Source of the DNA: Phallusia mammillata | Lineage: Eukaryota | Reading direction: 5' to 3' | DNA length: 64,000 bases | Assembly: GCA_965637545.1 (NCBI GenBank) | Contig: OZ281498.1 | Span: forward strand, 18,228,001-18,292,000 | Part shown: positions 1 to 64,000 of the stretch, in pieces | Position numbering within the stretch: the first letter of the stretch is position 1 | Layout of the letters: each line of letters starts with the position of its first letter | Position numbers and translations under genes: made by a program | The notes under the pieces: generated by a model | Database searches by the model: none | What the model was told of the DNA's origin: nothing | Seen by the model: only the letters and a program-made list of their open reading frames with translations

Positions 1-69
1 TATTGTACAAGTTTTGTACTTTATTGTATTTTTTTGCAGAAAAACAAATATAAGTGGAAAAGCGGTTAC

Positions 70-3000
70 CAATCGAACACATTCTTCCGATAAATCCACT
101 CAAACATTCGCAGTGGAAGTCACGCTTTCCAACATTCGAACAACTGCCACCATTGAGACATGGGTTGGGTTGACAACGATCCACTGAAATTTAACATTTT
201 TAGATACGAGTGATTAGGATTGTGCCTATTTAAATATAGGATACATAAACTTAACGTTCTCTTTTGACCAGATATTTATGTTATAATTTTACTTGTGTCA
301 AATTAAGTTATGTAATACAGTTAAGTTGACAAAAATGATAAAGATTTGGTACAATATGTTTTTACCTCTATTGCACTTGGATCCAACATATCCAGGAAGA
401 CAAAAACATTTTAATCCGCGCAAAGTGTTCAGGCAAGTTGCACCGTTGCCACAAAAATTGTTTTTGAATGCAGTTTCATCTGTTACATCAAAACAAAGTT
501 TAAACGTAAACGGCTATTGGGTGACCAATAAACTACCTGGTATATAGTAACATATTTGTTGGACATCAGACACTAATTGTATTGATAACTGTTCAAAAAT
601 GTGGTGCACGGATTGAACGTATAATAATTGTGTAATTATTATGCATTATGTTTTTTGGACACAGGCCAAAACAGAGACCTAATATTCAAATTATGTTTGA
701 AACATAATTCCAAATTTGATTTAGCTCATAAAACGACAACCTGGTTCATGAATGACTGATTGTTATTTGCAATTTTTAAATCAACTCTTACCAAAATATG
801 CTTTCCAATGCATCTTGACGGTAGGCTGACCCCAACCGAAATGCAAATCCGTCCTCCTGACCATAGCTTTAAATCCAAATCGTTTGACAACTATATCGGT
901 CACCTCAAAACGGTCGGGCAGTGTTTTGTTTCCAATAGCAATAGCAGTAATTTTTTCAGCCAACCCGCGGTGGCAACTTTCATAAGGTACTTTAATCGCC
1001 AACCTGTTGCTGTAGCCATAGTGACGAGTCACATTGTAACTGCCAGTCAGAATATCTGCAAAAATGCTAATATGGAAAAATGTACCAATCTTTTGCCATT
1101 ACTTTCTACATGTAGCACACATTTTTTGTTATCAAACTGAATGTGAATAAGACATACGCAAAGAACAGTCTTCGCCACCATATCCTTCGCTGCAAGAACA
1201 GTTGAATCCAGTGTCTGTATCAAGGCAAACACCGTTGTTTTTACATGGCATTGTGGAACAGTTGCGAATCTCTGAATACAGTAATGAAAAAAGCTTTTCG
1301 AGTTATCGAAGTTTTGCGAATTTTATCTTATTGAACCCACTTTCTTCACAGAACTCGCCCTTGTACTGCGAGGTACAGTTGCATACAAACTTGTTTTTGT
1401 GTATTATTGAACACTGAGCTCCATTTTTGCATGGATTGTTTGGAAAACCATCAGGAAGAAGAGAGTCTGTAAACAAAATAATCATTGTTTATCCACGGAT
1501 TATGTCCAAGCATTATGTAAGAAAAATATTAGAGAAACACCACTATGAGGATAAAAATATACCATTTTTGAAAATACCTGGATCAACAATACATCTTTCT
1601 CTACATTCTATTTTATTTCGTAAAAACATTTTATAAAATATCTAATACTTTAGAAGACTAAAAGAGTTTTAAATAGAACAGCAGTTAAATGTTGGATTAC
1701 AAAATATTCCATTTGATCACATTACTTACCAAAATAAGCGGTAAATTGAAGAGATAGACGATAAAACGCTCGGCGCACTACGTCGTTTGACGTACGACGT
1801 ACAGTAACGTCAAATCCGTTTCTGTGCACTTGCCTGAGATAAGGCGTGTAATTAAACGGCGAATTTCCCAGACTGATTAATTTCACAGCTACAGCTGTCG
1901 GCCTGCGGTTGTAGCATTCGTCAAAAATGAATGAGGCGTATTGATACCAAACTGATATGTCAACTTCAATGTGTCGTATACCGCTAATAAAACCTTTAAA
2001 TAATAACTAAATGTAATTGAATAACCTTGATTAAACTTAACCTATAAAGCAACAAGTGAAATATACATATACATATATAACAGCAATTGAAAATGCAACC
2101 TGCCTATTAACCCAATGTTTGTAACTATTTGAAGTAACAAAGCACTAAGTTTATAGACATGCTATACGTAAATCAATGTGAAAACAGCGCTAGTTATTTA
2201 GTTTATTGATAAAGTTATTATTCTATTTTGCGTTGTTTTGCATGCTTGTATTACTGTTGTGACTGGTAGCTTAATTGTTTAGCCCAGGGGCGTGCAACTG
2301 TTTATCGCGGTGGGCCACAACTTACAGTTAAAATAATGCTGAGGGCGAGACAACTAAGCAACATATACATTTTTTTAACAGCTTATTTAATAGCAAGGGG
2401 CACACAATCAAGTAACTCTTTGAGTACTCTTTGATCAATGGGATATGTGCTAACCGTTTCGTAGAATAAATCTCAATATATTTACTGCACCTATAAATCT
2501 TTTTACTGAATCATTAAAGGCTGTTCTTTCATAATGCACACGATGATGCAACAACGGGAATATGTCGTCACAGTAGATAAATCCTTATCACGGTGTGACG
2601 TTGTACAAATTTAAAATTGCCAGTGATGGTGTACAAATAGCAACATTACATGCTCTAACAGTAAAAAGTATTCATAATTGATAGAGTAATTTGAATGCGC
2701 GGGCCACGAAAATAGGTGCCGCGGGCCGTATATTGCACGCCTCTGGTTTAGCCTTTTTTACACTAAATTTTTTTGTGCTAATTTGCGCAACGGCGGTAGT
2801 ATATTTATTCATTATGCCACTGTTCAGCGTTTCATTTTATCAATGCTGACGATGCCAGAAGCTGTTGTTGAATAGCTAGACCAGCGGTTCCCAACCTTTG
2901 TGGTGCCGTGACCCCTTAAAACAGTTCCCAAGTTGCAGTGACCCCAACGATAAAATTAGCAGGCTTTATTGAATTTGCTTCTAAATATCGCGAACTTTAT

Positions 3001-6000
3001 TTCTCACTATACTTTCTTTTCCTAATACTTGCTTTCGATGCATCATTGACAGCCTGAAATTTTACTCATTAAATTTCAGTTTAGTTGACTATTAAGTTAT
3101 AATTAGAGGATAGTGATATTATCGCGAGAATACAAAACAAGTTGGCAGGTGACTTGGTGATTATGATATGTAAATGCAGTATTATTACGTAATAGAAGGC
3201 AATAATCAGCATTTTGTGAAAACAATTAAGTCTTCAAAAAAGAAAGATCCACCCCAACTGTAGTTATTAGTTTTCATACGAGTTAACAAACCATGGCGAA
3301 AGGCATGTTGATAACTGTTCTTTCGGTTTTTATTTGCTAAATTAGTCCACGGCTTAAAATGAGTTGGAAGCCATGGCCTTAGGGAGGCGACCCCAGGCAA
3401 ATTGTCAGGCGACCCCACTTGGGGTCGCGACCCACAGGTTGGGAACCGCTGAGCTAGACATTAAACATGTCTTCTTTTTATGGTAGGATATATGAATAAA
3501 TCAATGATATAAATAAATCTCATTTACACTTGTGCAAAGTGTGCTAACAAACTTATTTGTTTTCAATATGGGAAAGTAATTTGCTACCTTTTATCGTCAT
3601 CTGTAAAAAAATGTTAAAATAAGATATAATGTTAAAATGTGCTACTGGACAAAATCAGCGTTGGTTTGATAACTCCAACTCACTGATTTCACAGTTGCTT
3701 CCACCAAACCTTTCGGCACAATCACAACGATGGCCATATTTTGTATTCACACAAGTTCCCCCATTTTTACATGAATGACTTTGGCAATATAACATCTCTG
3801 CAAGGGACAAAATATCATCAAATTACAGTTTTTGTGTTTCATTTTAAACTAAAAGGCACAAACCTGTTTCGCACAATTTTCCTGTATATCGACCAGTACA
3901 GTTGCAAGTTACATTGTCTAAAGAGTTTGTACATTGGCCGCCGTTAGCGCAGGGATTTGCATCAACAGTGGTTACAGCATCTACAACAGAATTAAACAAT
4001 GGCGAATGAAAAGTACTCCAGAAGCCCCTACAACCACTGTTTCAGACCCATCATCTATTTTCTCCACTTGTAACAAAATTTATTTTACTTTGCACAACAT
4101 TTTCTTCTACTTAGTATAAATATAATTTCAATAAGACTGTTTGCACTAAACTAAAAAATACATTTGCAAAACTTACCAAAATATGCTTTCCAATCAACAA
4201 CAATATCAATAAGGTGCCATTCGATTCCTTCGCGTCTGGTTAGAGACGCAGTGAAACCACCTCTACGTATTTCTTGTACTTGGACATCCACAAAATTCGC
4301 AATTTGACCACGTATCGATAAATCAATCCTTGAAGCGTTGATTCGTTTACACGAGTTATAAACGATGACCAAATTCCTGGCGTTGGAAATCCATTCACTG
4401 TTATTTTCGAGTACTTCTTGACCATTTACGTATCCTTAAAACAAGTTCTTTTTTGTATTATTGACCTGCGTTTGATGTTTTTGCAAGATTGTTTAAAACT
4501 CTTAAACGACAAAACTTACAAACTTTGCAGCATAATTCTACTATGTACACAGTACAGAGTATTAGGAGCTGGTGTATTTGTGTTAATTCATTAAACTTAC
4601 CAACTGTGCAGTTTTGACCTGCCCAACCTTTAGGGCACTCACATGCGTAATTTGTTTCTGTTTCAATGCATTTCCCACGAGAACATGGAGAAGGGTAGCA
4701 ATACTTAAGTTCTGTAAAGAAAAAGTGATAAATCTGCCCTTAAATCTGATAAATCTGTCGAATAAACAGATAGATTTTGTACTTCAGAATAACCCACGCA
4801 AGTTTTCAAAACTGAAGTTTCGGTGTTTAACCCCGAACTTTCACTAATTCTATTAACCTAATTTGAAAACTTATTATCAATCCTTTTACAGTTTACTTTG
4901 GTTTCCTATTTTTCACTTTACGTTTTTTTGATATATTGTTTATTTTATGTTTTTTAGCCATTTCTTTTTTGCGCGTGCTTTTTATCTAATAACACCTAAA
5001 ACTGTTCATGTTTATGCTGCTTATGCTACGCGTTTTCTTCGTTTTTTAACCACTTCGCACGTTTAACATGAGAATATTTTTCTTCAGACACCCTACTACG
5101 AGGACAAAAGAAAATTAGAAACAAAAGTGCTCACGTTTGTCACAGAATTCTCCGGTATAGCCCGGCTCGCAGCGACATTTTCTTCCAGCCGGGCTATTTT
5201 TGCAGCCGTAGTAGTTTACACATGGCATCTGCAGAAAATCGTAAGAATCTGTGGGAGTAAAAGACATGTGGTTGCGTCACTTTTTAAGTGCTTTGTGTTA
5301 CCGGTGGCTTCATACGTTGACAAAAAGATTTATTGACACAAACTTTTTAATGAACTTTAGGATCACGGTTATTATTGTAAGTTTTGCTTGAACAAAAAGT
5401 GCCGACATTTTTTGCACGAAAAAAGTTTATGTTGTCAATTTAAAAAACGCGGTAGTAAAAGCAAGAAAAAAAAGTAATGTTGCAAACAATGTTCCTTACC
5501 AAATATTGCCCTATAATGGAGATCTACTCCAAATTGACCCCATCCGAAGTTAACGCGATCAGATCTCCAAACATTAACCTGAAATCCCCATGGATATATG
5601 CCGAGGACTGACGAGTTAAAAGTGTCAGGCAAAGAGCTAGACCCTGTAACAGTGGTATCCACTCGTATAGCTGTTCCCGTGTAACATCGATCGTAGGAAA
5701 TGTTCTTCACCAAATTAAAGGGCGGCTCAAACACATAGTGTGGTGGGAGTCTATAACTTACGTGAATTTCAGGTCCTAATTAGAAAAAAAATAGTTAGCA
5801 ATGGTAAGTATATATGTTTTGTTTGGATTTTTTTCGTTTTTTAGAACTAAATTTATGCTAAAACATTTTTGAAATGTAACTAAAAAAGGAACTTTGATGG
5901 TTGTTTTGCATTTTAGAATACTACAAGTTTGTCAGCATTGTGTTGGTAATTGCTTTATGAATTTTACTTCTTTAGTGAACAAAAAGAAAGTTATTTTGAG

Positions 6001-8449
6001 ACAAAGTGAGTGATGCAGGTAATTATAAGGAGAAATCTAAGTTTTGAACAAGTGTTTTATGAGACTTGTAATACTGACCACGTTCGCAAAATGTGCCTGT
6101 GAACCGCCCAGTGCATTGGCAATAAAAGTTTTTCTGAGTGTCGAAACACGTGCCGTTGTTTTGGCACGGGTTGGACGCACAAGCAGGAACGTCTGTAAAA
6201 AATAGAACGTCAGCAAAAGATAACAACTTTAAAAGGAATTCGCTAATTCTAAATCGCAAGAATACATGTAAAACGTGTACGTGATTTTTTGGCAATACGC
6301 ATGTAATTACTGAGTTACTGAAATAGACTTCAAAAGAAAACAAATATATAAAGCACTAAACTGCTAAACCGTACTTGTGTTTTGTTAAGTGTATTTAAAT
6401 TTTGTAATAACTTCTTTGTACGGCAATATTATAGAAGCTTATATTACACCCTTCCTTAGCTTTACACAAGTATTACACTTTCGTAAAAACTCTTTACGGA
6501 CAAAAACTTTTTGTTAAAACTTTTTTTAATTTTTGTGGTTTAAGTCAAGTATCTTACAATACTATTTCAGGAAGGTCTTATCTTACAAACTTCACAAAGT
6601 CTTCCAGTATATCTTTCTGAACAGGCACAAACAAATCCATCCACTGTATTCGTGCACGTTCCATCGTTCCAGCATGGATTGATATAAAAATAACGGGGTT
6701 CTGAGATAAGAAATCAGTTAAAATGAGATCTAATAAGGTGCAATTAGTCAATTTGAACCTACCAAAATACGCTTTCCATTTCAGAGATATACTGGATACA
6801 TTCTTGTTGTCATTTTGTTTACGAGGCAACTGCAGTTTGGCAACAAATCCCCACAAAAATATCTGAGTTACTTGAATATCCTCAAGACCGGATATATTGT
6901 TGCTTACTGAAACATCAACCTTACCAGCTTTTATTGCTTTGCAGTTGCTATATAATATTGTAACATTTTCATTTGTAGATGTGATCCTGTGAACATGTGT
7001 TTCCGTAATATATTCTGAAAGTAGATTCTAGTTTTGTTATATGTAATATATTGTTGGTGATCAACTTTCAAGAAAAGCGTGTTTTTTGTGTCCAAAGAGA
7101 ATTTTTGTAATCCATGAAGCTACTTACTAAACGTGCAGACGTTTCCAGCAAACCCGATAGGACACAAACATTTGTAGCCATTGGTCAGTTCAACACACGT
7201 ACCACCATTGTCGCAGGGATTTACCAGGCAATGTACAAGCCCTAAAAATATATGAACGGTGAACAAACCTACTGATTGTGGTTCGAAAACTTGCAAAGTT
7301 GCAAAATATGGGCTTGTGAGGAAATGTTTCCCTTTCAATTGCTTCCTGTCAACAAAGTGCACCAGTTGATTGAATTACTTGCTTCACAAACCAAAGTCCA
7401 AAAGCCAATGTGTGCAGCAACAATCTGTCTTAATAGTTGTTTGCTATGAACATCTTACGCGTTTCACAAAGTTTTCCTCCATATTGTGATGGACAGTTAC
7501 ATCTAATTCCACTTTTTTGATTAGTACATGACGCTTCTTGATAGCAGGGATTGGACTTGAAGTTTGATGAGTCTATACAAAAAAACAGCAACATGACATT
7601 AGAATGTCAACAACAATTAATGCGCGGAACACTATACACGGACTTGAAAAGTAATTTGATCATAAACATTACTGCCAGAGTATAAATGCGCTGCAGTAGG
7701 TTATTTAATTTGTGTTGTACATATTAACCACTTACATTTTAACTTGAAACCTGCAAGCATCAAACAAACTGTGTAATTCGTAGATAATTGTTCTAATCTA
7801 AACATTTGTATTGTTTCCTAATATTTATTCCATACCAAAGAATGCTTTCCATGAAAGAATGACCCCGTTTTGCCACCAGTCGCGTCTGGTTTGATCCGTT
7901 CTCTGCACAAGAACTTGGAACCCCCATTCGTAAATGTTAAGAATTGTGGCATTAAACGTATCAGGCCACCGCTTATCTCCTTGGATCTCAGCCTTAATTT
8001 GATTTGCGGTTCCATTAAAGCATTGTTCGTACACAACATCGACAATTTTCCTCTCAGAGTATCTGTTTGATCCCACCTGCTTTTCATCTCCCACCCAAGT
8101 TTCACCTAAAACAACAACATAACACTCTTATTATTTGTAGAATAAAGAAATAGTCAATCAGACAATGCAAAGGTATATTCAAAAACCCTAGTTTTTACGG
8201 CGTACACATTTGTGCAGATTGGCCTATAACGGCCTCTAATATTATGCCAGATAGCAAAATGGGGATTAAATGCTTAAAAGTTATGTAAAACGCACAGTAC
8301 GTACTATAGCCCTTCTAGTTTATTACTGTCCGCAACACACTTTACATAATTGATAAAGATTAGAAACAAGATTTTAACTTACCTATCTCGCCCTTGGAAG
8401 AAACAACTGCAGCAAACACAACAAACAATAACAAACTAACTTTAAACAT
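70..8449 (-). CDS. Gene A: secreted protein, signal peptide + 6x[D (H-type-lectin-like) domain + 5-Cys EGF + 6-Cys EGF]; 3' end runs off the window
   Basis: Exons read by hand with AG/GT sites, internal exons phase 1-1, in transcription order: SP 8383-8449 ([22 protein letters not shown]); D 7836-8105; EGF 7459-7572, 7128-7241; D 6763-7014; EGF 6587-6700, 6079-6192; D 5500-5775; EGF 5135-5248, 4601-4711; D 4177-4434; EGF 3864-3980, 3684-3797; D 1730-1993 (absent from the ORF track); EGF 1341-1466, 1158-1271; D 792-1055; EGF 366-479, 70-183. The short stop-codon exon seen in paralogs B-D is expected left of position 1. Confidence 0.88.
2285..2745. mobile_element. hAT-type MITE
   Basis: TIR CAGGGGCGTGCAA...TTGCACGCCTCTG; perfect 8-bp TSD GTTTAGCC at 2277-2284 and 2746-2753. 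Confidence 0.85.
2882..3451. mobile_element. hAT-type MITE
   Basis: TIR CAGCGGTTCCCAACCT...AGGTTGGGAACCGCTG; perfect 8-bp TSD AGCTAGAC at 2874-2881 and 3452-3459. Confidence 0.88.
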
Positions 8450-19889: not shown

Positions 19890-19912
19890 ATATATATATA
19901 TATATATATATA
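19890..19912. repeat. (TA)n microsatellite
   Basis: Direct reading of an AT dinucleotide run. Confidence 0.85.
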
Positions 19913-23132: not shown

Positions 23133-23301
23133 ATAGCTGCAGACAGTGCACACTGTTTCGACCCATAAGGTCTCATCAATGCAGCTGGTGACGAGAGATC
23201 ATGCATATTGGCTAGTGTAGCCATCCTACGGCACTCCAGTTTGTTGGGAGTAACAAGTGCACTGACCGCAGCTTATTATTCACTTACTGGATGCTTTACA
23301 T
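23133..23301 (-). mobile_element. Short hammerhead-motif retroelement (family 2)
   Basis: 11-bp TSD TGTTATGAAAG at 23122-23132 and 23302-23312; contains a three-stem hammerhead fold at 23135-23186 and an inverted partial tail. Confidence 0.72.
23135..23186 (-). ncRNA. Type I hammerhead ribozyme motif (U3 variant)
   Basis: Minus strand: AGCUGCA-UUGAUGA-GACC-UUAUG-GGUC-GAA-ACAGU-GUGC-ACU-GUC-UGCAGCU. Stem I 7 bp, stem II 4 bp, stem III 5 bp, GUC cleavage triplet. The only core deviation is C3->U. Confidence 0.65.
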
Positions 23302-41974: not shown

Positions 41975-42951
41975 GTCGGCTTTCTGCTTTGAACGCAACT
42001 AATGCAATCTGCTGCAGCAGATGTAGGTCTAGTTCAGCTTTTCTCTTCGATTCTTAACTTTGACCCTACTTTAACGAACCAGACAACATATCACCTCTAA
42101 ATAGCATAGCATATTGTATAACATTTTAATAGCTTCACATAACGATATGTATTGTTGTTAAAAATTAAACATTTTAGGGCGTTGCTACTTTACAACACAA
42201 AGATTTGTTTGTGTGCTTTAATAACTTTCACAAATGTTGCCCAGTTGATGTTATAAGTACAATAGTTACCAATTATCACTAGTCTACATAACTGCATTGG
42301 GCGTGAAACTGGTACATGTAATTGCAATTGCACGTTCATTGTGGTGAAATGTTCTATACAATATTGTGTACACTTTCCACGTTAAGTTGTTTCGTGAATT
42401 TGAATCAGCTTGGTTTGAGGAGCTGGAAAAGTAACAGTTTTTACCACAAGCCCCGCATAAACATTTGTCGTAGGTTCGAAATTAGCCGCAGGCTAAATTT
42501 GTAAATGCCTGGATCTGTTTCGGTTGTATACCATGAACAATGGTTGGCCACAGTACTTTGGACAGATGGCAAAAAATTACCTGTCATCAATAATGGTAAA
42601 ATTACTTTATACTTCTGAGAGAATAAAACTAATAAAAATGCGACAATGCTCTGTATAGTTGCTAATACTAAATAGTTGCTAATACTAAAATAATAGTTCA
42701 TTATTGTTTTTTACGACTGCGTAAATTTACAAGACTAGTGGAGGTGGGCAATCATAATTTTACTACCCCGGATGATGGAGATTAAACCAAACTTTCCTAC
42801 ATAAACAGTCACTTTCTATCACAGTGATTGATAGACATTAGCAGGGTGCCGCCAAAAGAGAAAGGCTAACGTGCCTTTCTTGGCGGTTTACCGCAATAAT
42901 TATATGATCACAGTTGTCGTGATATATTTGCAGGGAAGCAGAACGTTGAAA
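41975..42951. promoter_or_regulatory. Candidate bidirectional promoter region between head-to-head genes D and E
   Basis: 977 bp between the two divergent ATGs; block ~42290-42600 is strongly conserved in the duplicate at ~54350-54640. Confidence 0.5.
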
Positions 42952-45722: not shown

Positions 45723-45765
<43 letters not shown>

Positions 45766-48700: not shown

Positions 48701-51700
48701 TTTTTATTTTATTTGAGATATAAGCGAAAAAAAACACTCACATATTGTGTAAACCTTATCATCATTAAAATTCCAGGAGGTGCCTGGGTTGGAGGCAGTG
48801 CAAGAGTTGGATCTTGGTGGAGAACCAAACCACCCTATTCAAAGCAAATAAACGTTGTGTATGATCGATGTTACAACGGGACAGCAATTGAAGTTATAAC
48901 GACTGTCACTGGAGATAAAAGACGTCCGGAAAGATTTAGAGCCACTATTATCAACATTTATGATTGGGGATTTCAATCACAGGTAGAAAGAACGGACCAA
49001 AACTTCACTTGGACGGAGGAAAATGTCGAGATGCAGTGGAAGTCGTTTTACGGTAACAAGTTTTTGTTAAGTATAGCGGGTGAATGGTACCTGCAGAAGA
49101 ATATAGATAAAAACAGTATTTTATTAGAATGCAATTTTCGTGACATAAAATATATTTTCTCATGTCTCAAATATTTTGTTTCAAGACACTTTTGTCGTTG
49201 TTGTAAATTGTAGTGGTTTGATATCAAAGTATGAAAAGTGAGACAATTGAAATAAAATATGTGCATTATCCGACATTAAAATTAATACAGTTTTGTTAAG
49301 GAATTTTGCAATGTGTAGTTTGCTGTAAAACTGAGTTTGGTTTGCAGGTTCGCAAGATTATTTAACAAATCCATGTCTAAACGCGGGAACATGTACCAAC
49401 AGTGCAGCCGGACAAGCCTGCCAGTGTCCTCCGCAGTACGGAGGAGATCGCTGTCAAACACGTAAGTTTTGGCTTACGGCATGCTTGAAGCTAACAAAAT
49501 TTTCACCATTTTTAAAATAGATTAAAATTAAGTTTACTGTTTGTTACAAAGGAGATAAAAAAACAAGTTTCAAAGAAATACAAATTGTGATCAATTTTTT
49601 GTCCAATCACAAAATGTCCTGAAAAAAGCTTTTAATCTGAGCATTTGTTGACAATATTAACCATACGATTGAATTGCTTCTGACACATCGAGTTGTAAGA
49701 GCCCAAAATTAAATCTTGAGCGCAATACACCGGCCCGAAATCTGGCGTTCGGGTGGCCTCACCTTCCCCAGTTGTCCCTATGATGTTGTGGAACAACTTT
49801 AATAAAAAGTTGATAAAAACGGAAGTATTTTGCTTCTAAGGGCTTGTGCATTGCTATCCCAATCCTTGCGATGGAGGAACTTGCACAGAATCGGATAATG
49901 GTTACAACTGCACATGTCCAACAGGAACAACAGGAAGAAATTGCACTCAGGGTAAATTTACCAAAGAAAGTACATTGTTTATTCTTGACAGCAGTATGAG
50001 TATATAAAAATGGTTTGACTTTGCGGATTGCGGCTTAGAACGATATTCTAAAGATTAACTGCATAGCTACTGTTGCTAGTTCCAACTTTGCTTATCTTTT
50101 ATGGTGTACCTGTGTCCAGCACAAAATCTGATAGACAAACCATCCGTTTTTGTAAAGCCTCACATTAAAGTTAAAGATATTTTCAGGTTACGAAGAAGGC
50201 GCCATTACCCTATCACTCGGAGATGGAAAAAACAGCATGACATCTATATTACTTTACACGACGTGCAAGAGCGAACCTGCCATTGAAATTATACCTTTGT
50301 TTGACAATCAGTTCTCTGCTGATGTAGGAGTCAGAGTGCTCAGTGTTTATCAATGGGGTTTTCAAATCAAGATCTGGCGAAAGAAAAATGAAATCAACTC
50401 CGCAAACATTTTAGCATTGATCCAATGGAGAGCAATTTTCCGTAAGAGGTCCAAAAAATATTTAAGAATCCTGTATATGGTCACATTTTCATAAAAAGAT
50501 TACAATTGAAAAAAAAACTGATAATGTAGTATACAGGTAGAGCTATCGTGAATATTAGCAAAAACTATGATATTACCAGCCATTACCTAGTGTTTCATCG
50601 CTTTAGGATCAATAAACCACGAAACAAACCCATGTGGAAACGGAGGCACGTGCAGAAACATAGAAACAGGAACAACGTGTGATTGTGCAAAACTTACAAC
50701 TGGACCATTGTGTGAGACTCGTAAGTTAATAAAATCCAACTTTTACCGCAAGACTCTAGCTTCCTGAAAACTAAATTATTTTATAAGGTTTAACACACTG
50801 TGCATCTTCTCCATGCATGAACGGGGGAACTTGCATACCAACTACGGATTATTTTAGATGTGTATGCCCTGCAACACACACCGGAGATCGTTGCAATGTT
50901 GGTAAGATTGTGTGAATATTGGATTCAGAAAAACATTCTCTGACTTCAAGAAACACTGTCTCTGGCCGGGTGTTAATTAAAACTTATATTACAAAATGAC
51001 TTACTCAAGTCCTGTCCGTGCAAAAACTTAAATTGCAACACCAAGTACCTGTCTGAATCATTGTTTAAATCAGTTATACAGGCACAGTTAAATTATTGTT
51101 TATACATTGTAAGCTTATATGTAAATTTGGACTGTTTTGGACATACTTTGGCACATACACTGCTAAAATTTATAAACGAGCATTGCTTTTCCAGCAATTT
51201 TATCATAAACGAACGACGTTTCGACGTCCCATACGAGACACCTTTATCATGATAATGGCATATCTCCAAACACAAATGTCTCACAAAGTTAGTACATTTT
51301 GCCTGGCAGCAACAGCTTATTTACTGCTTAAAACTTTTTAGGTTTAGACAATATTGGTAAAAAAAAACGCCCTGCTTTACATATATATTAAAAATACTCA
51401 AAGCCTTATGACAATTTGTGCCAAATGATTTTTAATTATTGTAGAACCAGGGATCACTTCGCAAGAGGTCTTGTCCAGTTTTAGCGTAAGTGGTCCGCCG
51501 TATGGAAAGATTGTAGAAGTCGTCTACGATCGATGTTACAGCGAAATTGCAAAAGATGTTAAGGGAAGTGTAAGGGGATCGATATTGTATCCGGATACAT
51601 TCAAATACACAATTTTAGGAATTTATCCGTGGGGATTTCGAGCACTGGTGCAAAGAACCGATCGTCAACGCGTTGGCTGGAGTCAAAGATCGGTTGTTTT

Positions 51701-53254
51701 TCGTTACAAAGCTATCTTTAGTAAGTCAGGTTTTTCCTAATTGTTGTAGTTACTATTACGAATGTGAGCGTAGTGTTCACTCACTCGTTGTATCTACCTT
51801 TTCTGCAAGTTTGCCCTGTATTACTTGTGTAATTATCGCCTTTATAAGTTCTTTTAGTTTTGATTATCGGCTTTATATATTGTCAGACTGTTTTAATTCT
51901 ATTGTTTAGCCACTTTGAAACGATAGAATATGAAGAAGTTTAACAGTAACAGTTAAATATTATTACGAAAGCTAAATTGTTGCCATCCCAACTAAACGAT
52001 TTTTGTAAAGTGAATTAAAGGTTGAATCTACATTACACCTGTCACTTAAAGGGTAACAGATGAAAGTAATTAACGATAAAAATTTAAGATATTTAAAATA
52101 TATATTTTTTGTTTAAGAAACTCGGGATTTCTCTGCATCACCATGTGTAAGCGCGGAAAGCTGTACAAACAATGCTGAAGATGGAAGAGTGTGTAACTGC
52201 TCACCAGGATACTCTGGAGAATTTTGTGAAAAAGGTAAAAAATTCTCAACACAGCTTAGCATCTAAATCACCACATTACAGTTCACAACTTGAGACCAAA
52301 AGTCAAGTAACCTTACATTTTAATTCAAAACATAAACTTGGTGCTCAAAACAACTCATAAAATTGTTGTTTAGTCCTTTAACAAAAGTTTTTTTACAAAA
52401 CCAAAAAATCGAGACAGTCCTGTAAAGTCAATAGGGCGATCCAAGTTAAATGTATCATACGAAAGTAAACACATAGTTTAATATTTTTTAAATGATAAAA
52501 AAACAAAAAATAAACTGTATAGTAAGTGGTTTCAACCTGCTCGTAAGACATTCAAAGATGTAGAAGAGATACAGATAAAATGACTTGACATTTCAACTGA
52601 AAGTCAATTCATTGGGTGTTTGATTCTATTTTTTTATGTTACAGTCACAAGAGTAAGTGGAACAAAAATTATTGGGTCTCTCGAAGACAGGCCGCCTAGC
52701 ACCAAAACAGTCAACGTCGTCTATGAAAAATGCCACGGTGGAAGGGCCACTGAAATTAATGCAACTGTAAGGGGCTCCACCCGTTACAGTGATACCTTTG
52801 AGGCAACAATCACGGACATCTTTACCTGGGGCTTTCGGGCGGTGGTGAGGAGAACTGACCGCCTGAACAGTGGATGGGGTCAGAGAAGAGTTAGACTTCT
52901 TTGGACCGCAAATTTTAGTAAGTTTTATAGGTTTGAATTTCTGAGGAAATCGTATTTTATGATTCTCAATGTGTTTACCGAATAGTTTGGGTCTAATCAT
53001 AAGAGTTGAAATTAAATGATAAAGTCTTGCATAAGTCGTTTGCTTTTGGTGTAAAGTACTTTGGTCATAAGATTGCAAGTAAGGTTCTTCAAAAAACTCA
53101 AAATGATTCGAAACTATTGTTTAAATTCGCAGATACACAACAGGATTTTAAGAGTCCTTGTGCAAATGGGGCAAGTTGCACCAATACTAAAGGAAAAAGG
53201 ATCTGTAATTGTCCACCAGGCTTCAGGGGAGAAACATGCAAAATATCAAACTAA
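42952..53254 (+). CDS. Gene E: secreted protein, signal peptide + 6x[D + EGF + EGF] + 2x[D + 5-Cys EGF] (~1271 aa predicted)
   Basis: Exons: SP 42952-43009 ([20 protein letters not shown]); D 43197-43466; EGF 43647-43760, 44664-44777; D 44942-45199; EGF 45570-45683, 45851-45964; D 46222-46497; EGF 46739-46855, 47044-47154; D 47284-47556; EGF 47735-47848, 48381-48491; D 48777-49052; EGF 49348-49461, 49841-49951; D 50187-50441; EGF 50607-50720, 50788-50901; D 51445-51720; EGF 52118-52234; D 52645-52917; EGF plus stop 53133-53254. Sum 3816 nt, in frame. Confidence 0.88.
45721..45762. repeat. (CT)n microsatellite
   Basis: Near-perfect TC dinucleotide run in an intron of gene E. Confidence 0.9.
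48055..48359. repeat. Two degenerate family-2 hammerhead-element copies
   Basis: 48055-48125: minus-strand CTGATGA-GATCTTATAAGTC-AAAA plus a plus-strand GTGTACACTGTCTGCAGCTT tail. 48308-48359: AGCTGCA-TTGATGG-GACC-ATATA-GGTC-AAAA. Both have core mutations. Confidence 0.6.
51214..51320 (-). repeat. Degenerate family-1 hammerhead-element copy
   Basis: Contains GACGTTTCGACGTCCCATACG and the GCCTGGCAGCAACAGCTTAT tail shared with the 11217, 29174 and 34748 copies; CTGATGA is mutated. Confidence 0.6.
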
Positions 53255-54730: not shown

Positions 54731-55432
54731 TTTAATCATAAACATTACTGCCAAGGTAGTGGTGTATATAGAATACATCGTGTAGACGTTTCATCAGATT
54801 GTCGAAACGTCTACACCAGGGGTGGGCAAACTTTTCAGTGAAAGGGCCGCATTCAAAAGTTTTTAATCTTATGGGACCGCATAGTATTTCACCAACGGCC
54901 GCCAATGGCTTGCTTGTTTTTTGTTTCAAAATAACTGGAAGAATTAGGTTTATATCATATAAATATACCATTCAAGGTCTTCTAAACGCTCAGATTAATA
55001 ATTTCCAACTTGATGAATTAGTTTAGCTGAAAGGAGCTAACTGTTTATGACGTCATAAACTGTATTGTGACGATTCCGGTGCCTGTTTTTTCGCATTGTT
55101 TGCACACAAGCGGATAAAAAGTCTGGCGCATATGATTCCTGGGCTGGTAATCTTTTTCAAATCCTCACGAAATCCGTTTTAGCAGTTTGAAAATCAAAAT
55201 ATTTGGCAAAATAGTTTTAGTTACGATACGGTCGCCAGTACATGTATTTTAAAATACATGGCCACGGCCGCCCTAACTCGTCTCCGCGGCCGCATGTGGC
55301 TTTACGGCCGGCGGGCCGCATAAACTCCTTTGCCGGGCCGCATGCGGCCCGCGGGCCGTAGTTTGCCCACCCCTGGTCTACACGATGTATTCTATACACA
55401 CCACTACCTTGGCAGTAATGTTTATGATTAAA
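54731..55432. repeat. Long palindrome (~70-bp arms) centred on a collapsed hammerhead-like core and interrupted by a MITE
   Basis: Left arm TTTAATCATAAACATTACTGCC...GTGTAGACGTTTC, centre ATCAGATTGTC, right arm GAAACGTCTACAC[MITE]GATG...TATGATTAAA; 13-bp direct repeat TTAGCCTATTACT at 54719-54731 and 55437-55449. Confidence 0.75.
54817..55375. mobile_element. hAT-type MITE
   Basis: TIR CAGGGGTGGGCAAAC...GTTTGCCCACCCCTG; perfect TSD GTCTACAC at 54809-54816 and 55376-55383. Confidence 0.9.
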
Positions 55433-55680
55433 CTACTTAGCCTATTACTGTTATCTAGGTAGCCAGTCGAGGTGAAAAGTCATTATTTTACTATCCCAGT
55501 AGATGAAAAATATGAAACTAGTTTTTATGTAAACTTAGCTTTCCTACATACACAGTCACTTGTTATCACAAAACTTAATGAAAATAGACAGCGTGCTGCC
55601 AAAAGAGAAAGGCACCCTCTGCGGTTTACCGCAATAATTACTTGATCACAGTTGTCGTGACAGAAAGCAGAACGTTGAAA

Positions 55681-58600
55681 ATGGTAAAGTTTGTAAAATT
55701 TGTATTGCTGCTGCTGTTTGCACTGGTCGGACTAGGCCATTGTTTTCTGGGTAAGTATATTCTCTGAGTCCTAATTGTATTCATACACAGTCAGTACTGA
55801 AAAATCTTTGGGTATTTTTAAAATCAAAATGTAATCCTAGTTAGATCGTCTCAAATCTTGGTAGACTTTTTAGTCACTCATGCAGAGTAATATGTTTGAA
55901 CATGCAGTTCTCGGTCAAACTCTATGAACATTCCATAACAGTTTCCGAATGCAAAAATCCATTTACTAACTGTTTCAATAGCAGACAATCCATACGACTT
56001 TCTTAAGAAATTCGACTCGAATGTTTCAGGTAGCACTTGGGTCACAGGAATAGAAGATGTCGGATCCAACATATACGGGAATCCAAAAATAATAGATGTG
56101 GTGTACCACCGATGTTTCTATGGAATAGCAAAGCGAGTCGGAACAACCGTTCGTGGCGAAAGAAGATACTCGGATACTTTTGCAGCCACCATTCTTAACA
56201 TTTACGAATGGGGGTTTCGACTACGCGTGGACAGAACCAACCATCCTACAAATGATTGGGCTCAGAAAGGAGCTGTTTTGTCGTGGAAGGCATTTTTTGG
56301 TACGTTGGCATGCGTTTGCTTTTTGCTTATGTAAAAAGTTGTTTTTCGGTCGTGTTCTGACACACCACAGCAAGAGTTGCATTAGTTTTTTGTCAACAAA
56401 TAACGATGCTAAAATCCTCTTATTACTAAACTTGAATTTGTGTCAACAGAGACGACAACATATCAGGACAATCCCTGTTTACATGAAGGTAATTGCACCA
56501 ACGAGGCCAACGGTAGGGTCTGCCAATGCACTGAACAATACTCCGGCAACCTTTGCGAGAAGCGTAAGTTTGCACAAATGCATTTAACATGTCATTGAGG
56601 AAGCAATGCTCCCAAATATTTCCTTGGCAACCCAACGTGTGCAATTTTGGGGGGAAGGTGTTGGAATTGCACATTAGCAGTAAGTCGTTCCACATTTCAC
56701 AGCATACGATAAGTGAAAAGTTCACATTGATTTGACACATGTCATGGACTCATCGCGTTTTTTCTTCGAATTTCTGTTCTGGTCACGAATAAACCGGTTT
56801 AGTAGAAACATAACACGAATCGAAAGCGAAATTCTGAGATCAAAGCACGTTTTGATATCTTGAAGCAGATTAAATTAGTTTATTAAACGGTGTACACAAT
56901 TTAGTAGTGTACGTTTATTAAAATGTAAACGGTCTATAAAAAGGGTCTTTCAGGCCACGGCTTTGTACAAAATTCCAATGGCCCTAATCGCCCAAGTCTT
57001 TTTGCTGCGTTGCAGTAAATTTCACGTTTAATGTCAAAAGCATTTGCAAAAAAACGGACATGGCAAGTCAAAAAATTTTCAAAATGTTCAACTGAATGAC
57101 TGGTTTTACATTTTCCAGCATGCCGATCTGTTTAAGGCCCAAAAGGCCTGAGGGGTTTACACTGCAATGCGTTCTATTGGATACCATGTGAAAGCAATGG
57201 TCAAACTGCAACACAGTGTGTGACATGAACTATTTCGCGACCTTTAACCTATACGATAAGCGGTTTTGCCTTAAACTCCGTGTTGCGACGTCATTAGGTT
57301 TAATAGGATTTTAGTTTGATTTAAACTGAACGTCTTGAACTGCTTTGCACTGCTATTGCAGGGTTTGCTTTTTACAAATTACCAAACTTTGATACTTTTA
57401 GATTAGAGGTTCATGTAACTTGTTCGATTTTGATACAATATTAAGCGCCTATAGCAATGTGAAAAAAGTTATTTTTGCAATCTCTTTTTCACAAAAAAAT
57501 ATGACTGGGACGCTTTTTTAGCTTTGGTGTATTGTTACCCAAATCCATGCCATGGAGGAACTTGCACCGAGTTTGATGACGGCTACAACTGTTCGTGTAC
57601 AACAGGAAGGGAAGGAATAAACTGCGAAAAGGGTAATACATAGGACATGTTTAAAATTTTAAGCAAACCGAATGGCAGTACTATGAAATCAGATATGCAC
57701 TACGTGTACTATTATAACAACTAAGAACTTGCAGTGTAGTGAAAATCCTAGAATGTACAATTTTAGACGTTATATCGGACCATGCTGTCCTGTAGTGATA
57801 AACATTATGATAAACATTTAGTCATCGGTACTAAAGATTTTTGACATATATAATATACAAATATACATAAGTGCGCCTTACAGCGTCATCAGTATCTGTA
57901 AGAAAGCATGTAACATATCGTGTCGGATTTAAATTAATGTTTAGCTTTCTTTTTAAGATCATCGTGTACATTTGAAATTCAACTCTTTTTTTCAGGGAGC
58001 GAACAGAATGAAGCGAATCTTTTATTTGATAACACTTCAACCACCAGCATAACGTCCAAGATACTTTACTCATCATGTAAGGCTGAGGACGCCATAGAAG
58101 TTAACCTATCTGTTCACAACCACGTGTCATCTACGGTTGGGGCCAAAGTCATTGAAATTTACCGCTGGGGTTTTCTGGTCAAAGTCTGGAGGCAAAACGA
58201 AGAAGCAAACCCTGCCTACGAACCTATTGAAATTAGTTGGAATGCTGTGTTTGGTGAGAAGTTGTCTTATTGAACTATTCAATGTGTTGATTAGAGTGAG
58301 TTTTAAATCGCTTTTTGTTGCAACCAGCAAAATAACTGGAAATGATTTTAAGAATAAAATTGAAATTTTGGAATACTACATACAGATCTCTTCATTTTAA
58401 TGGTGAAAATCACGGCCCAAAAAGACGTAAAAAGCGACATGCTTTATATTTCAAACGTTTCGATATCACTGATGATAAGCATTTGCCGAAACATTTGAAA
58501 TACAAAGCATGTCGCTTTTTACGTCTATTTTGGCAGTTATTTACACCATTAAAATGGAAATAATATAAGACCGTCCGCTCATTACGATCGTTGTGATGCA

Positions 58601-61600
58601 AAAAATGCGCATGTTACATACTACTCAATCATTAACTACTTGTCACAGATTCAGCTGATGCTTCGACAAATCCTTGCCGGAACGGCGGGAGTTGCAGAAA
58701 CGTTGATCAAGGAACAGAATGTGATTGTCCGAGTCTAACCACCGGAACACGATGTGAAACTCGTGAGTTTCGATTCTAATCATGATGGTTGGTGGAAAAA
58801 ATGCACTACACCCCAAACATTCACCTAAATTAGATTTTCTCGCACTGCTCCAAATTTCCTCCAGGAAAAACCCTATCACATAACGCCTTATTGATGTAGA
58901 TTTAGCCAATTAACCTATCTAGGTGATAGCCCAGTTTTGGGCGGAAATTAATATGTTAGGATCTGGAACTACTTCAGTTTTTATCGTTTTAGTGCCACTG
59001 ACCCATATATGTTTGTTTACACAATCTTTAAGAATTTAAATAAGATATGTTAAGCGTGAAGTCGTTTTCGCGAATTCAATCAAGACATCACTAGCGTTAT
59101 TAGTTGGGTAATACTTTCTATTTACACACGACTTATTGTTAGGTTTGACGCATTGCGTTTCTTCCCCGTGCATGAACGGAGGTACTTGCATTCCAACACC
59201 TTCACACTACAGATGTGAATGTCCATTAGCTTTCAGCGGTGATCGATGTGACACTGGTAAATATTACCTTTATACAAATTACCTTTAGGAGGGGGAAATT
59301 ACAACGTTTGTGGCCGTACAAATATGTCTAATATGAATAAGATAGCTGCAAATAGTGCAGGCAGATACGGTTTGACATTTTTTTAGAAATGTGCCTGTAT
59401 TCGTCACAGTTTTGGGAATTCTAGAATAACAAACAGTTGAAAAATGTTTTTGTTAGTTAAATACTTTTAAAGAATTTACAATTTTAAAAATGTTAAGGAA
59501 TTTGATCAAGAGTCTAAACTGTACCTATACACGTTTTGCAGAACCAGCTATCGATTCGTTTGTGCAAATATCAAAATTTCGAGCCCGCGGTCCACCATAC
59601 GGTCCAATCATCGAAGTCGCTTATGACCGTTGTTACAGTGGAATCGCTAGAGCCATCAACGCAACAGTTACTGGGTCGAGCTACTATTCAGATAAATTCA
59701 ACCACACCATCTTGGGAATTTATCCGTGGGGGTTTCGGGCCTTGGTGCAAAGAACCGATCGCCCATACGCAGGTTGGGGACAATCTTCAGTCAAGCTTCG
59801 ATACAAGGCAATTTTTGGTAAATACGAAATTTTTGGTTAGGTGTGGAATGGCTACCATTTTTCAGAGATTTTGTATTACTTTGTCTTTCAAAAATATTGA
59901 AAATGCCTGTTTCTTAGGTGAAATATATTTACAAAGCGTAGTTTAGCTAGAAAATCTAGGATGGATTTAGACTGCACAGTTTGTAACGTTTGTGTTTTAT
60001 TGTTTTGTATCAAAATCCGCTTTAGATTATCTTTTTCGTTATTTGTTTTTAAAGAAACACGTAGATTTACGGAAACACCATGCTTAAATGCGCGAAGCTG
60101 CAGGAACAATGCTGAGGTTGGGCGAAGGTGCTACTGTGAAGAAGACTACACTGGAGAATTTTGTGACACAAGTTCGTAGTTTTGGTTTTCTCGATATTTC
60201 CAAAATACCATTAGATTTGTGGTACTTAATTTCAAAATTCTTCCATGTTCTTTACCTGATCCTACCAATAGCTAGTCGTAACCTTATTGATCAAATTAAG
60301 GGTTAACAAATGTTTAATTTTTTGCATTATGTGTAACATTATTTTTTAGGGGTGTGAGTTCTGTGGTGAGGTTTTCAAACTTACATTTGTACATATATAT
60401 AGCTAATTAGTTGTTTGATTCAGCATTGTCTTTCTGTCGTCCAAATCCCTGCAACACTGGAACCTGCACAGAACTCGAAAACGACTTCAATTGCGCTTGT
60501 CCGGAAGGAAAAGGAGGACCAAATTGCGAGATAGGTAAGAATTAGGAATTGCCGCATCAGTTTACTGGCAAATTAAACATACTTTGTGATATACCCACAT
60601 AAACCGACAAGAAAGTAGAATCAGTGGCGTTTGTTGTTGGCAGCAACAAGAGAGTCCGGAAGATACTTGGTTGGTTGGAACCCGGATATTGCGCCGTACA
60701 CAAAAACTGTGAAAGTAACGTACAAAGAATGTCATGGAGTAATTTCCCATAACATCAGTGCAACTGTGACTGGTAGAGGCATGTGGAGAGACACGTTTAG
60801 CGCCACAATTTTAGAGATAGTATCCGGAGGATTCACGGCATTGGTTCGGCGAACTGACCGGTCAAACATAGGATGGGGCCAACGCGATGTCAACTTACGC
60901 TGGACGGCATATTTTGGTAATGTTTTTGACTTACATAAACATTATGACGACGTTACTATGTATACTAACTTAGACATTGTTGTAAACATTGTTAAAATGC
61001 TCAGGATTGCAAAAACATTGTAATTTTGCATTCAATGTCCACTACAGTTTACAATAAAATAATGTCTAGGTAATTTGTTTTCCAGATGTTGACCAATCGC
61101 GAGGCGTCCCGTGTTTAAACGGTGGCGAATGCATCAACAGCTATACAAGCCAAGTATGTGATTGTCCCGACGAGTATGGAGGAGAATCATGTGAAACACG
61201 TAAGCCAAGAAAAGGAACCTACTGGCCATACCCTGCCTATTTCTATAAAGTTCCAACGTCTCCTCAGGACAATGCCATAAGCAAATTTTCTTCTACTACC
61301 AACAAACAAAAAGCATGCTTTGCTTGAGGGGACTTTGCTTGAGTTTTGTACTAAGTTATTTGTTTCCTAAATTTAAACCACTTTTTATGCAGGTCTTTTC
61401 CACTGCATACCTAATCCATGTAACAGCGGTACGTGTATCGAGTTACCGACAGGTTATGAGTGTTCTTGTCCTAAGGGTTGGAACGGGCCAGATTGCTCTT
61501 TAAGTAGGTATATTTTTTATTTACACAGAGAAACTAAATTACCTGAACTTGTATCTGTGCGCAAAGTGTAACATTTTTACAAACAAATAAGTAAAAAACC

Positions 61601-64000
61601 TTGATCCGAACATTTCCATAACTATATGCGCATTTTAGAAAGTGTTTTTAAAGCATTGTTGGGTATTGAGTTTCCCAAAACAAGTTTTCAACAATTGCAG
61701 TCTTTAGGTGTTTGCATTTTCAGTCGCTATAACGAAACATCTGTTGTATTGCAAAAAAGAGTATTATCACTTTTAGGGGGTCCATGAACGGAAAAATTCA
61801 CAAACTGTGCAAATCTTACTGTGTTTAAATTCTAGGAGGTTTCTGGGTCGGAAGCACCGCAAGAGTTGGAGCTTGGGCGAGAACCGAACCTCCCTATTCA
61901 AAGCAAATAAACGTTGTGTATGATCGATGTTACAACGGAATAGCAAGTGAAGTTATAACGACTGTCATCGGAGACAAAAGATGGTCTGAAACGTTTAGAG
62001 CCACTATTATCAACATTTATGATTGGGGATTTCAAGCTGAGGTAGAAAGAACGGACCAAAACTTCGCTTGGACACAAAGAGGTGTCGATATGCATTGGAA
62101 GTTGTTTTATGGTAAGCAGTTTTAATTGTAAAAACAGCCGCTCAAGCCTACCTTATAAAGAATATAAAAAAATGTACTTGTAATTGTCGCTGTTGAGCAT
62201 TTGACAACAAAGTCTAAAGAGCGAGGCACCACAGAACACCTGCATGACCTGACATTAAAACTAGTTAAGGTTTTTCAAAATAACAACTTTAGTAATACAT
62301 CAAATCCATCAACAGCATGTCTTAAACTGACGATCACTGTTTGCCTTTTTAACTATAATACAGTAAAACCAATGGACTATAAAATCCTTGGTATAACAGA
62401 ATCAGTCGGTTCATTTGAACGGTTCATTGATTTTATAGTCCATTAGTTAAGGTTTTTGTGTTGTAGAAAAATAACAGGTAACAGGTAAACAATTTTGCAA
62501 ATGCTGTAAAACCGACTTTGGTTTGCAGATACGGAAGATTATTTAACAAATCCATGTTTAAACGAGGGAACCTGTACCAACAGTGCAACTGGGCAAGTCT
62601 GTCAGTGTCCTCCACAGTATGGGGGAGATCGCTGTCAAACAAGTAAGTTTGGGCTTGAATCATGCCTGAAGCCAACAAACTTAAAACAGCACTTGCAAAG
62701 TAGCTTGCAATTAGGTTTGCGGCTTGTCACAAACAAATAGGTTTCTTAGAAGTACAAGTTTTAATCATTTTTTTATCTCATTACAAAGTTTACGGGTAAA
62801 GGCTAATGATCGACTTGTTTGCAGGCTATAATACGTATACAATAAAACACAAAATTGCCAGACGGAGACCCGTCCTAAACCCAAACATTTTAGGTCTCCA
62901 TTGCGCCAGAAATTGTATTTACTGAATAATCAAAGTAAAGTACGAAATCTGTTACCAGAATGTTTAAAACGACGTTGTAGCGGTTTGACTATACTTCACC
63001 AGCCATAAAAGTCACTGTTATGATGTATGCACAATAAGTTTCAAAGTTTGATACCAACGGACGTATTTTGCTTCCAAGGACTTGTGTATTGTTATCCCAA
63101 TCCTTGCAATGGAGGAACCTGTTCAGAATCGGATAATGGTTACAACTGCACATGCCCAACAGGAACAACAGGAAGAAATTGCACTCAGGGTAAATTTCCT
63201 GGAAGTGCATTGTTAGCAGTTTATGTAAGCTTAAAATAGCATGACTTTGTGGTTGCGGCTTGGGACGATATTCTAAAAAATGACTGAATAGCTATTGCCA
63301 CTAACTTCAACTTGGCTTCTCTTTTTTAGCCACCAGTGTAAAGCACAAAATCAATTCGATAAAACACCATTTTATAAACTGACTTATATAACTTACATTT
63401 TTAGGTTACGAAGAAGGCGCCGTTATCCTATCACTCGAAGAAAGTAAAAACAGCATGACATCTATATTACTTTACACGACGTGCAAGAGCGAACCTGCCA
63501 TTGAAATTCTGCCGTTAGTTGACCATCAGTTCTCTGCTGATGTCGGAGTTAGAGTGCTCAGCCTTTATCAATGGGGATTTCAAATAAAGATCTGGAGGAA
63601 GAAAAATAAAACAAGCTCCGCAAACATTTCAGCGCTGATCCAATGGAGAGCAGTTTTCCGTAAGAGCTCAAAAAATAGTTTTCCAATCTTTTAGTAGGTA
63701 ACAATTTTTTTATAAGGAGACTATAACCTAGTATTTCGTCGCTATAGGATCAATAAACAACGAAGCAAACCCGTGTGAAAACGGAGGCACGTGCAGAAAC
63801 ATAGAAACAGGAACAATGTGTGAGTGTGCAGAACTTACAACAGGACCATTGTGTGAAACTCGTAAGTTGACCAATACAATCCTATGGTTAACACAAGCAG
63901 TAAATGCAACTTCCTGAAAATGAATTATGTTTAAAGGTTTAACACACTGTGCATCTTCTCCATGCATGAACGGGGGAACTTGCGTACCAACTAGGAATTA
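55681..64000 (+). CDS. Gene F: tandem duplicate of gene E, signal peptide + at least 6x[D + EGF + EGF]; runs off the right end
   Basis: Exons: SP 55681-55750 ([24 protein letters not shown]); D 56030-56299; EGF 56450-56563, 57522-57632; D 57996-58253; EGF 58649-58762, 59143-59256; D 59542-59817; EGF 60055-60171, 60424-60534; D 60644-60916; EGF 61086-61199, 61393-61503; D 61836-62111; EGF 62529-62642, 63079-63189; D 63405-63659; EGF 63748-63861, 63937->64000. Colinear exon-for-exon with E, including similar introns. Confidence 0.87.
58393..58556. repeat. Palindromic repeat (~70-bp imperfect arms)
   Basis: CATTTTAATGGTG...CAAACGTTTCG versus CGAAACATTTG...CACCATTAAAATG; a related shorter copy at ~35740-35805. 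Confidence 0.7.

Follow-up and report, generated by a model that had tools for sequence, protein, structure and literature searches.

A tandem gene cluster in the ascidian Phallusia mammillata encodes predicted secreted proteins built from repeats of a divergent H-type-lectin-fold domain and paired EGF domains

The DNA analysed here is a 64,000-nucleotide stretch of the Phallusia mammillata genome (assembly GCA_965637545.1, contig OZ281498.1, positions 18,228,001 to 18,292,000 of the forward strand), referred to below as the window. It holds a tandem cluster of six paralogous genes, each of which joins a signal-peptide exon to repeats of a three-domain unit, [D-EGFa-EGFb], where D is a domain of about 90 residues and EGFa and EGFb are two types of epidermal growth factor (EGF) domain. 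Profile, structural and language-model searches place D in the H-type lectin fold. We favour, at a probability of about 0.55, the reading that the genes encode a secreted, multivalent family of H-type-lectin-like proteins that bind carbohydrates and act as innate-defence agglutinins or capture proteins.

Organization of the gene cluster

The window is AT-rich, with a G+C content of 35–39%, and its exon-intron structure is of the animal type. A profile built from the recurring segments of about 90 residues retrieved exactly 38 D exons from the six-frame translation of the window, with expectation values (E) between 1e-15 and 1e-35, and beyond these copies the rest of the translation lay at noise level. 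An EGF profile detected 74 EGF exons, and one further exon of the EGFa type, which the profile had missed and which shares an open frame with the D exon before it, brings the number to 75. These counts, together with six signal exons, are exactly those of an earlier note made from the sequence alone, and its proposal of six paralogous genes with signal exons also holds, genes A–D being on the minus strand and genes E and F on the plus strand. All complete domain exons lie between an AG acceptor and a GT donor, have lengths that are multiples of three and are phase 1-1. The D exons measure 246–276 nucleotides (nt) and the EGF exons 105–126 nt, and they are separated by introns with a median length of about 255 nt. 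The signal exons start with ATG, are hydrophobic and have phase 1 ends, and each is in frame with the first domain exon of its gene. Altogether, 112 of the 113 domain exons combine an open frame with intact splice sites in the right phase, and since the exons share 20–75% identity and fall into ordered subtypes, the array is far beyond chance. The genes and their exons are listed below in window coordinates.

Gene A, 8449 to the window start (1–8449), minus strand: signal exon 8449–8383 and 6 × [D-EGFa-EGFb]; D exons 8105–7836, 7014–6763, 5775–5500, 4434–4177, 1993–1730 and 1055–792; last EGFb exon 183–70; the C-terminal tail lies off the window start.
Representative unit of gene A, minus strand: D 8105–7836 (1 cysteine), EGFa 7572–7459 (5 cysteines), EGFb 7241–7128 (6 cysteines).
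Gene B, 18598–9564, minus strand: signal exon 18598–18535, one EGFb exon (first EGF, 18037–17924) and 5 × [D-EGFa-EGFb]; D exons 17703–17458, 14832–14557, 13422–13162, 12025–11765 and 10354–10091; stop codon ending at 9564.
Gene C, 28976–21533, minus strand: signal exon 28976–28913 and 4 × [D-EGFa-EGFb]; D exons 27414–27139, 26030 to about 25770 (frameshifted), 24022–23762 and 22488–22225.
Gene D, 41974–30208, minus strand: signal exon 41974–41911 and 9 × [D-EGFa-EGFb]; D exons 41399–41127, 40151–39891, 39076–38807, 37708–37436, 36666–36418, 35671–35396, 34072–33812, 32807–32544 and 31788–31534; stop codon ending at 30208.
The 75th EGF exon, in gene D, 38740–38627, minus strand: EGFa type with 5 cysteines, 114 nt, phase 1-1, AG acceptor at 38740 and GT donor after 38627.
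Gene E, 42952–53254, plus strand: signal exon 42952–43009 and 8 D exons, arranged as six full units, then D-EGF, D-EGF and stop; D exons 43197–43466, 44942–45199, 46222–46497, 47284–47556, 48777–49052, 50187–50441, 51445–51720 and 52645–52917 (the acceptors of D exons E6 and E7 placed by homology with F6 and E3); last EGF exon 53133–53254, including the stop codon.
Gene F, 55681 to the window end (64000), plus strand: signal exon 55681–55750 and at least 6 units; D exons 56030–56299, 57996–58253, 59542–59817, 60644–60916, 61836–62111 and 63405–63659; the final EGF exon, at 63942, is cut at 64000 by the window end.

The number of D domains is 6 in gene A, 5 in B, 4 in C, 9 in D, 8 in E and at least 6 in F, in agreement with the earlier description of long modular proteins of varying D count. 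That description had the three-exon unit repeating strictly. The phase 1-1 units do run throughout the array, and the strictness fails in four places: in gene B the signal exon leads directly into an EGFb exon, only one EGF exon comes after E7, E8 is succeeded by one EGF exon and the stop codon, and the second D exon of gene C (25770–26030, minus strand) lacks 4 nt that its paralogue, exon B3, contains just ahead of the last strand, a deletion that breaks the frame. Gene C may be a pseudogene, may contain an assembly error or may skip this D exon, in which case the frame is retained.

Genes B, C and D continue for 9–15 codons past the last EGF domain before the stop codon, with AATAAA or ATTAAA 68–292 nt downstream; for gene B this is an 11-residue read-through tail with the polyadenylation signal 68 nt past the stop. 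In gene E the stop codon comes 2 codons after the last EGF domain. The C-terminal tails of the window genes are short and hydrophilic, and a scan for transmembrane exons downstream of genes B–E gave only the chance-type hydrophobic frames of AT-rich DNA, none of them tied to the genes, in keeping with the view that these four genes end in a stop codon with no transmembrane helix. Genes D and E are arranged head-to-head on opposite strands with start codons about 1 kb apart (41911–43009), which suggests a shared bidirectional control region between them. Two D exons on opposite strands are found on a genomic contig (L002).

Identity and fold of the D domain

Structure prediction, language-model search and profile search are three independent lines of evidence that identify D as a divergent H-type-lectin-fold domain, a homologue lying below the curated Pfam threshold (PF09458, IPR019019). 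The AlphaFold2 model of D, built from a 36-sequence alignment (A1), has a predicted local distance difference test score (pLDDT) of 91.6 and a predicted template modelling score (pTM) of 0.80, and its six strands form an antiparallel β-sandwich of the snail agglutinin type. The top matches to this model found by Foldseek in the PDB are the agglutinins of Helix pomatia and H. aspersa, the foot of the R1 pyocin fibre, the C-termini of phage tailspikes, SLL-2 and the discoidins. In the language-model search D was placed beside the PF09458 clusters with a score of 0.94 and 190 shared features. When the D profile was compared with 1.84 billion representative proteins, 67 were matched at E ≤0.001, and several of the distant matches contain a Pfam H_lectin domain at exactly the matched residues (E of about 1e-13); alignment of D to these Pfam-positive H_lectin domains with hhalign gave a probability of 98.7% and an E of 2e-16 over 82 columns. 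A profile of the same Pfam-positive domains had discoidin I and the Helix pomatia and H. aspersa agglutinins as its top structure matches, although weakly (E 0.075–0.7), and a metagenomic H_lectin protein used to search the solved structures gave no usable match. It is at the level of fold and remote homology, and at that level only, that the lectin-like character attributed earlier to D is upheld.

The known H-type lectins (PF09458) include Helix pomatia agglutinin (2ce6/2ccv), Helix aspersa agglutinin (4q56), coral SLL-2 (3wmp) and Dictyostelium discoidin I/II in its C-terminal domain (2w94/2vme), and D is about 10–13% identical to the solved members. These lectins have one domain per chain and form trimers, whereas the window genes string together 4–9 D domains in a single chain, with two EGF domains after each, and D, unlike the known H-type lectins, is probably disulfide-linked to the first of them. 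The fold is also shared with the tips of R-type pyocin fibres and of phage tailspikes or fibres (6cl5/6cxb, 4ru4, 4ru5, 4mtm; Gp53-like_C, PF21882), which are single C-terminal domains of homotrimeric fibres in bacteria and phages, without EGF domains, introns or tandem repetition, whereas D is repeated and accompanied by EGF domains.

Cysteines of the repeating unit

Each unit contains 12 cysteines, one in D, five in EGFa and six in EGFb. The single cysteine of D is at an invariant position, residue 28 of the domain, in 36 of the 38 exons, EGFa has five cysteines in all 37 exons, the first EGF cysteine being the one missing, and EGFb has the six cysteines of the EGF-like domain (PF00008) in all 36 complete exons. 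Because EGFa is without the first EGF cysteine, its third cysteine would be left unpaired, and from the 1 + 5 + 6 distribution we predict a disulfide between this residue and the single cysteine of D, which would probably fix D on its EGF spacer. The 1/5/6 pattern recurs in all four units of CAB3264411.1, a second P. mammillata protein described below, one D-EGFa-EGFb unit of which was modelled with a pLDDT of 80.5 and a pTM of 0.66. The calcium-binding consensus was found in none of the 72 EGF exons checked; O-fucose consensus sites are present in 33 of these and O-glucose sites in 7.

Relatives and taxonomic range

Only one other protein among the 1.84 billion representatives has the [D-EGF-EGF] architecture, namely P. 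mammillata CAB3264411.1 (P0001, 717 residues), which contains 4 D and 9 EGF domains in a model that is truncated at its 5' end. Its best D domain is about 45% identical to the window, three of its D domains group in the domain tree, at strong support, with D6, D7 and D8 of the window and follow one another in the same order, and its C-terminus runs 13 residues past the last EGF domain with no membrane anchor. The protein carries the database label 'Notch precursor'. Pfam recognizes only EGF-type models in it (EGF E 5e-46, 9 stretches), and in a word-indexed homologue search its likeness to Jagged, Notch and Crumbs was confined to the EGF repeats, so that the label is a mislabel with no basis other than these repeats. 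Membership in the Notch or Delta-Serrate-Jagged families was rejected for the proteins described here, since LNR, ankyrin, transmembrane and DSL/MNNL regions are all absent from CAB3264411.1 by Pfam and the tails of the window genes are of the short, hydrophilic kind noted above. Short genomic contigs with the same D and EGF exons were present in run DRR090687.

In Ciona intestinalis, unannotated D-like domains are fused to two other types of lectin domain. They lie N-terminal to the fibrinogen domain (Fibrinogen_C) in two proteins named 'ficolin-like' and 'MFAP4-like' (P0031 and P0054), one of which also has a trefoil insert, and C-terminal to the lectin domain (Lectin_C) in a protein named 'C-type lectin 4E-like' (P0034). 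These three share with the window D domains the conserved cysteine and the R-T-D...W motif in the setting of secreted lectin-type proteins, but each has one D and no EGF repeats, and in the domain tree they make up a clade of their own. D-like domains also occur in several uncharacterized small proteins of C. intestinalis and in Clavelina lepadiformis. A 1086-residue P. mammillata protein named 'CD97 antigen-like' (P0020) has two D-like domains near its N-terminus (residues 100–177 and 293–371) and a weak, sub-threshold match to GPR128_N; the D module is thus also used on a probable membrane receptor.

The nearest relatives outside the ascidians are bacterial or metagenomic, for example in the myxobacterium Minicystis rosea (P0021) and on a gene-dense metagenomic contig of 43.7 kb (L003). 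The Minicystis and metagenome relatives consist of tandem H_lectin/Gp53-like_C domains that match a window D at 29–35% identity. Resolution in the domain tree is too low for transfer from bacteria, or its direction, to be inferred. A shape search of the ESM Atlas with the whole D-EGF-EGF unit returned no cluster with the same three-domain arrangement, all template modelling scores being below 0.5, and the literature searched contained no account of this architecture nor of any tunicate H-type lectin. The family had earlier been put forward as undescribed; this is correct for the architecture in the literature searched, and has to be qualified by CAB3264411.1, which is public under a wrong name, and by the D-like domains in Ciona gene models. 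According to one review, molluscs and brachiopods show no expansion of H-type lectins.

A partial analogy is offered by the selectins, in which an EGF domain directly beneath the C-type lectin domain sets its orientation, as EGFa would for D, at the end of a stalk of small disulfide-rich modules. Unlike the window proteins, the selectins are vertebrate, membrane-anchored molecules with another lectin fold and a single lectin domain each.

Evolution within the locus

In a tree, the 38 D domains separate into positional subtypes. Gene D has all nine (D1–D9), gene A has D1 and D5–D9, gene B has D5–D9 and gene C has D6–D9. Genes E and F are closely paralogous to each other, and their units 2–4 recur as units 6–8, which are seen in full in gene E. 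The gain and loss of whole units in frame is explained by the symmetric phase 1-1 exons. Ratios of nonsynonymous to synonymous substitution rates (dN/dS) between paralogues are 0.18–0.35 for D and EGF exons alike, at dS of 0.28–1.35, which indicates that the paralogues are under purifying selection.

Transcription

RNA-type runs were aligned to positions 42901–48900 of the window. One contig of run X1 joins 47848 to 48381 with 532 nt skipped between GT and AG ends, which is the predicted EGFa-EGFb junction of gene E, and the same contig extends beyond 48491 by 17 letters identical to the first ones of the D exon at 48777. The feature defined in this way is:

Three consecutive exons of gene E with junctions seen in RNA, 47735–49052, plus strand: junctions 47848|48381 and 48491|48777.

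Further X1 contigs lie inside the D exons 44942–45199 and 48777–49052 of gene E. The RNA check of junctions that the earlier note had called for thus confirms two junctions of gene E, all others being predicted. Next to no words of the gene B region are present in any RNA run. Two intronic segments of gene E (46611–46639 and 48100–48290) gave 95–99% matches from many short, high-depth contigs in three RNA-type runs, as expected of a dispersed repeat with transcription or abundant copies elsewhere in the genome.

Rfam and tRNA scans of the window found nothing at curated thresholds; a permissive Rfam scan gave only a weak match to the RAGATH-1 hammerhead at 23137–23202 on the minus strand (E 0.79; 19.7 bits, where the gathering score is 56.3), and nothing relevant in the intron segment 34748–34950. 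A G+C-rich open frame with much alanine, cysteine, glycine and proline separates genes E and F at 55277–55459 on the plus strand; its composition is atypical for the region, and it may belong to a repeat or mobile element.

Carbohydrate binding and the alternatives

In the mechanism that we propose, the signal peptide would direct each chain of 4–9 [D-EGFa-EGFb] repeats to secretion as a non-membrane protein. Each D, an H-type-lectin-fold module like those of snail agglutinins, discoidins and the tips of phage and pyocin fibres, would be presented on an EGF pair that most likely acts as a stiff, non-calcium-binding spacer, with the disulfide between the cysteine of D and the unpaired cysteine of EGFa probably locking the two together. 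Duplication or loss of whole units through phase 1-1 exons, which leaves the frame unbroken, would account for paralogues of different length. The function would most likely be to bind, at many sites, the carbohydrates of microbes, mucus or matrix, and chains may need to associate in register, since the sugar sites of known H-type lectins lie at interfaces inside a trimer. A recognition role is favoured because D is joined to two classical immune lectin domains in Ciona and because its relatives are receptor-binding fibre tips.

The residues that could form a sugar site belong to a signature, R-T-D...W-x-Q, that is common to D and its nearest relatives. Of the 38 D domains, 35 have its arginine. 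An invariant-to-frequent tryptophan, 6–7 residues after R-T-D, could stand in for the tyrosine of the canonical pocket, one of the two aromatic residues mutated in discoidins, and the cluster of arginine, aspartate and tryptophan makes a plausible sugar site as judged from the sequence.

Several observations weigh against carbohydrate binding by D. In the weak, gap-free alignment given by the profile of Pfam-positive domains and anchored on an invariant G-F, R68-T69-D70 of D falls at T82-W83-H84 of the Helix pomatia lectin and at the pocket tryptophan of discoidin I, a residue that was mutated as part of the binding pocket in a recent preprint. Because of this correspondence the canonical H-type sugar pocket does not seem to be conserved in D, the snail tryptophan and histidine being apparently replaced by threonine and aspartate. 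The full R-T-D...W-x-Q signature is kept in only about 18 of the 38 D domains and is lost in the β- and ε-type subtypes, so the real valency is perhaps below the number of D domains. In the known H-type lectins, which are homotrimers, the sugar sites lie at the interfaces between protomers, and D counts of 4, 5 and 8 speak against obligatory trios within one chain. Searches by sequence also give no direct link: ten D exons had no Pfam match by hmmscan at E ≤1, and neither the D profile nor a wider profile had a sequence match among solved structures. Expression evidence is thin, consisting of a few low-depth contigs from the one run X1, and the overall dN/dS is without the diversifying selection often found in immune receptors. 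Since the canonical pocket is apparently lost, the signature incomplete, oligomerization hypothetical and expression thin, we put sugar binding by D, and with it a lectin function, at roughly even odds.

The loss of the canonical pocket residues, and of the subgroup signature in half of the D domains, would be expected if the proteins were instead structural or adhesive components of a matrix such as the tunic, a mucus net, the egg coat or an adhesive, with D as a trimerization or assembly module and the EGF pairs as rod-like spacers. This is the main rival, which we consider unlikely. In its favour, phage and pyocin fibres use the same fold for a trimeric tip or for assembly, the D-like domain of Ciona occupies the position of the ficolin trimerizing stalk, N-terminal to Fibrinogen_C, and purifying selection is uniform across D and EGF exons. 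However, the phage and pyocin fibre-tip domains themselves bind receptors, including sugar, the invariant arginine and the frequent aspartate and tryptophan are gathered in one loop region as in a ligand site rather than in the core, and there are no collagen, VWA or ZP domains alongside D in the window.

A bolder version of carbohydrate binding, which we regard as doubtful, would combine binding with assembly in three-stranded 'lectin ladders'. The chains would lie in register, three D domains per layer forming a trimeric H-type node with three sites, and disulfide-stapled EGF struts would run between the nodes. The order of D subtypes, common to paralogues A–D and CAB3264411.1, would be a registration code, and mixed trimers would be possible. 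In the ficolin-like and C-type-lectin-like proteins of Ciona, D would replace the collagen stalk as the part that both trimerizes and recognizes, making it a tunicate-specific pattern-recognition scaffold whose domain came perhaps from bacteria.

The EGF domains might themselves be the active part. In ascidians, both self-recognition at the egg coat and metamorphosis involve EGF-repeat proteins, and the EGF domains of the window are Notch/Delta-like, retrieve Jagged, Notch and Crumbs in sequence searches and carry the O-fucose and O-glucose sites counted above, all of which would suit secreted EGF-type ligands for signalling or recognition in metamorphosis, gamete self/non-self discrimination or allorecognition, with D as an accessory. 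Such a role is rather improbable: DSL, LNR, ZP and transmembrane parts are all lacking, D accounts for over half of every unit and matches the EGF domains in conservation, there is no excess of amino-acid changes between paralogues, unlike in polymorphic recognition genes, and the RNA contigs are without variant sites. That the array consists of decaying, non-functional exon copies, whether pseudogenes or an annotation mirage, is very improbable; the frameshifted D exon of gene C and the sparse RNA, gene B in particular, are what one would expect from decay, but the near-complete set of open exons with intact splice sites, the low dN/dS, the spliced RNA of gene E and the subtype order D6-D7-D8 shared with CAB3264411.1 are not.

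Significance

Tunicates are the closest living relatives of vertebrates and have innate recognition only, and H-type lectins have been treated as a small single-domain family of snails, corals and slime moulds. The family encoded in the window is a real, lineage-restricted variant of this known lectin fold. The locus reveals a hidden branch of the H-type fold, specific to the lineage and missed by standard domain libraries, which in Phallusia has been made into long, multivalent, presumably secreted proteins by shuffling of symmetric exons and in Ciona has been combined with two classical immune lectin domains, and it corrects the database name of CAB3264411.1. If the D domains do bind sugar, the proteins would be a new class of multivalent recognition or capture molecules and a natural scaffold with binding sites at defined spacing.

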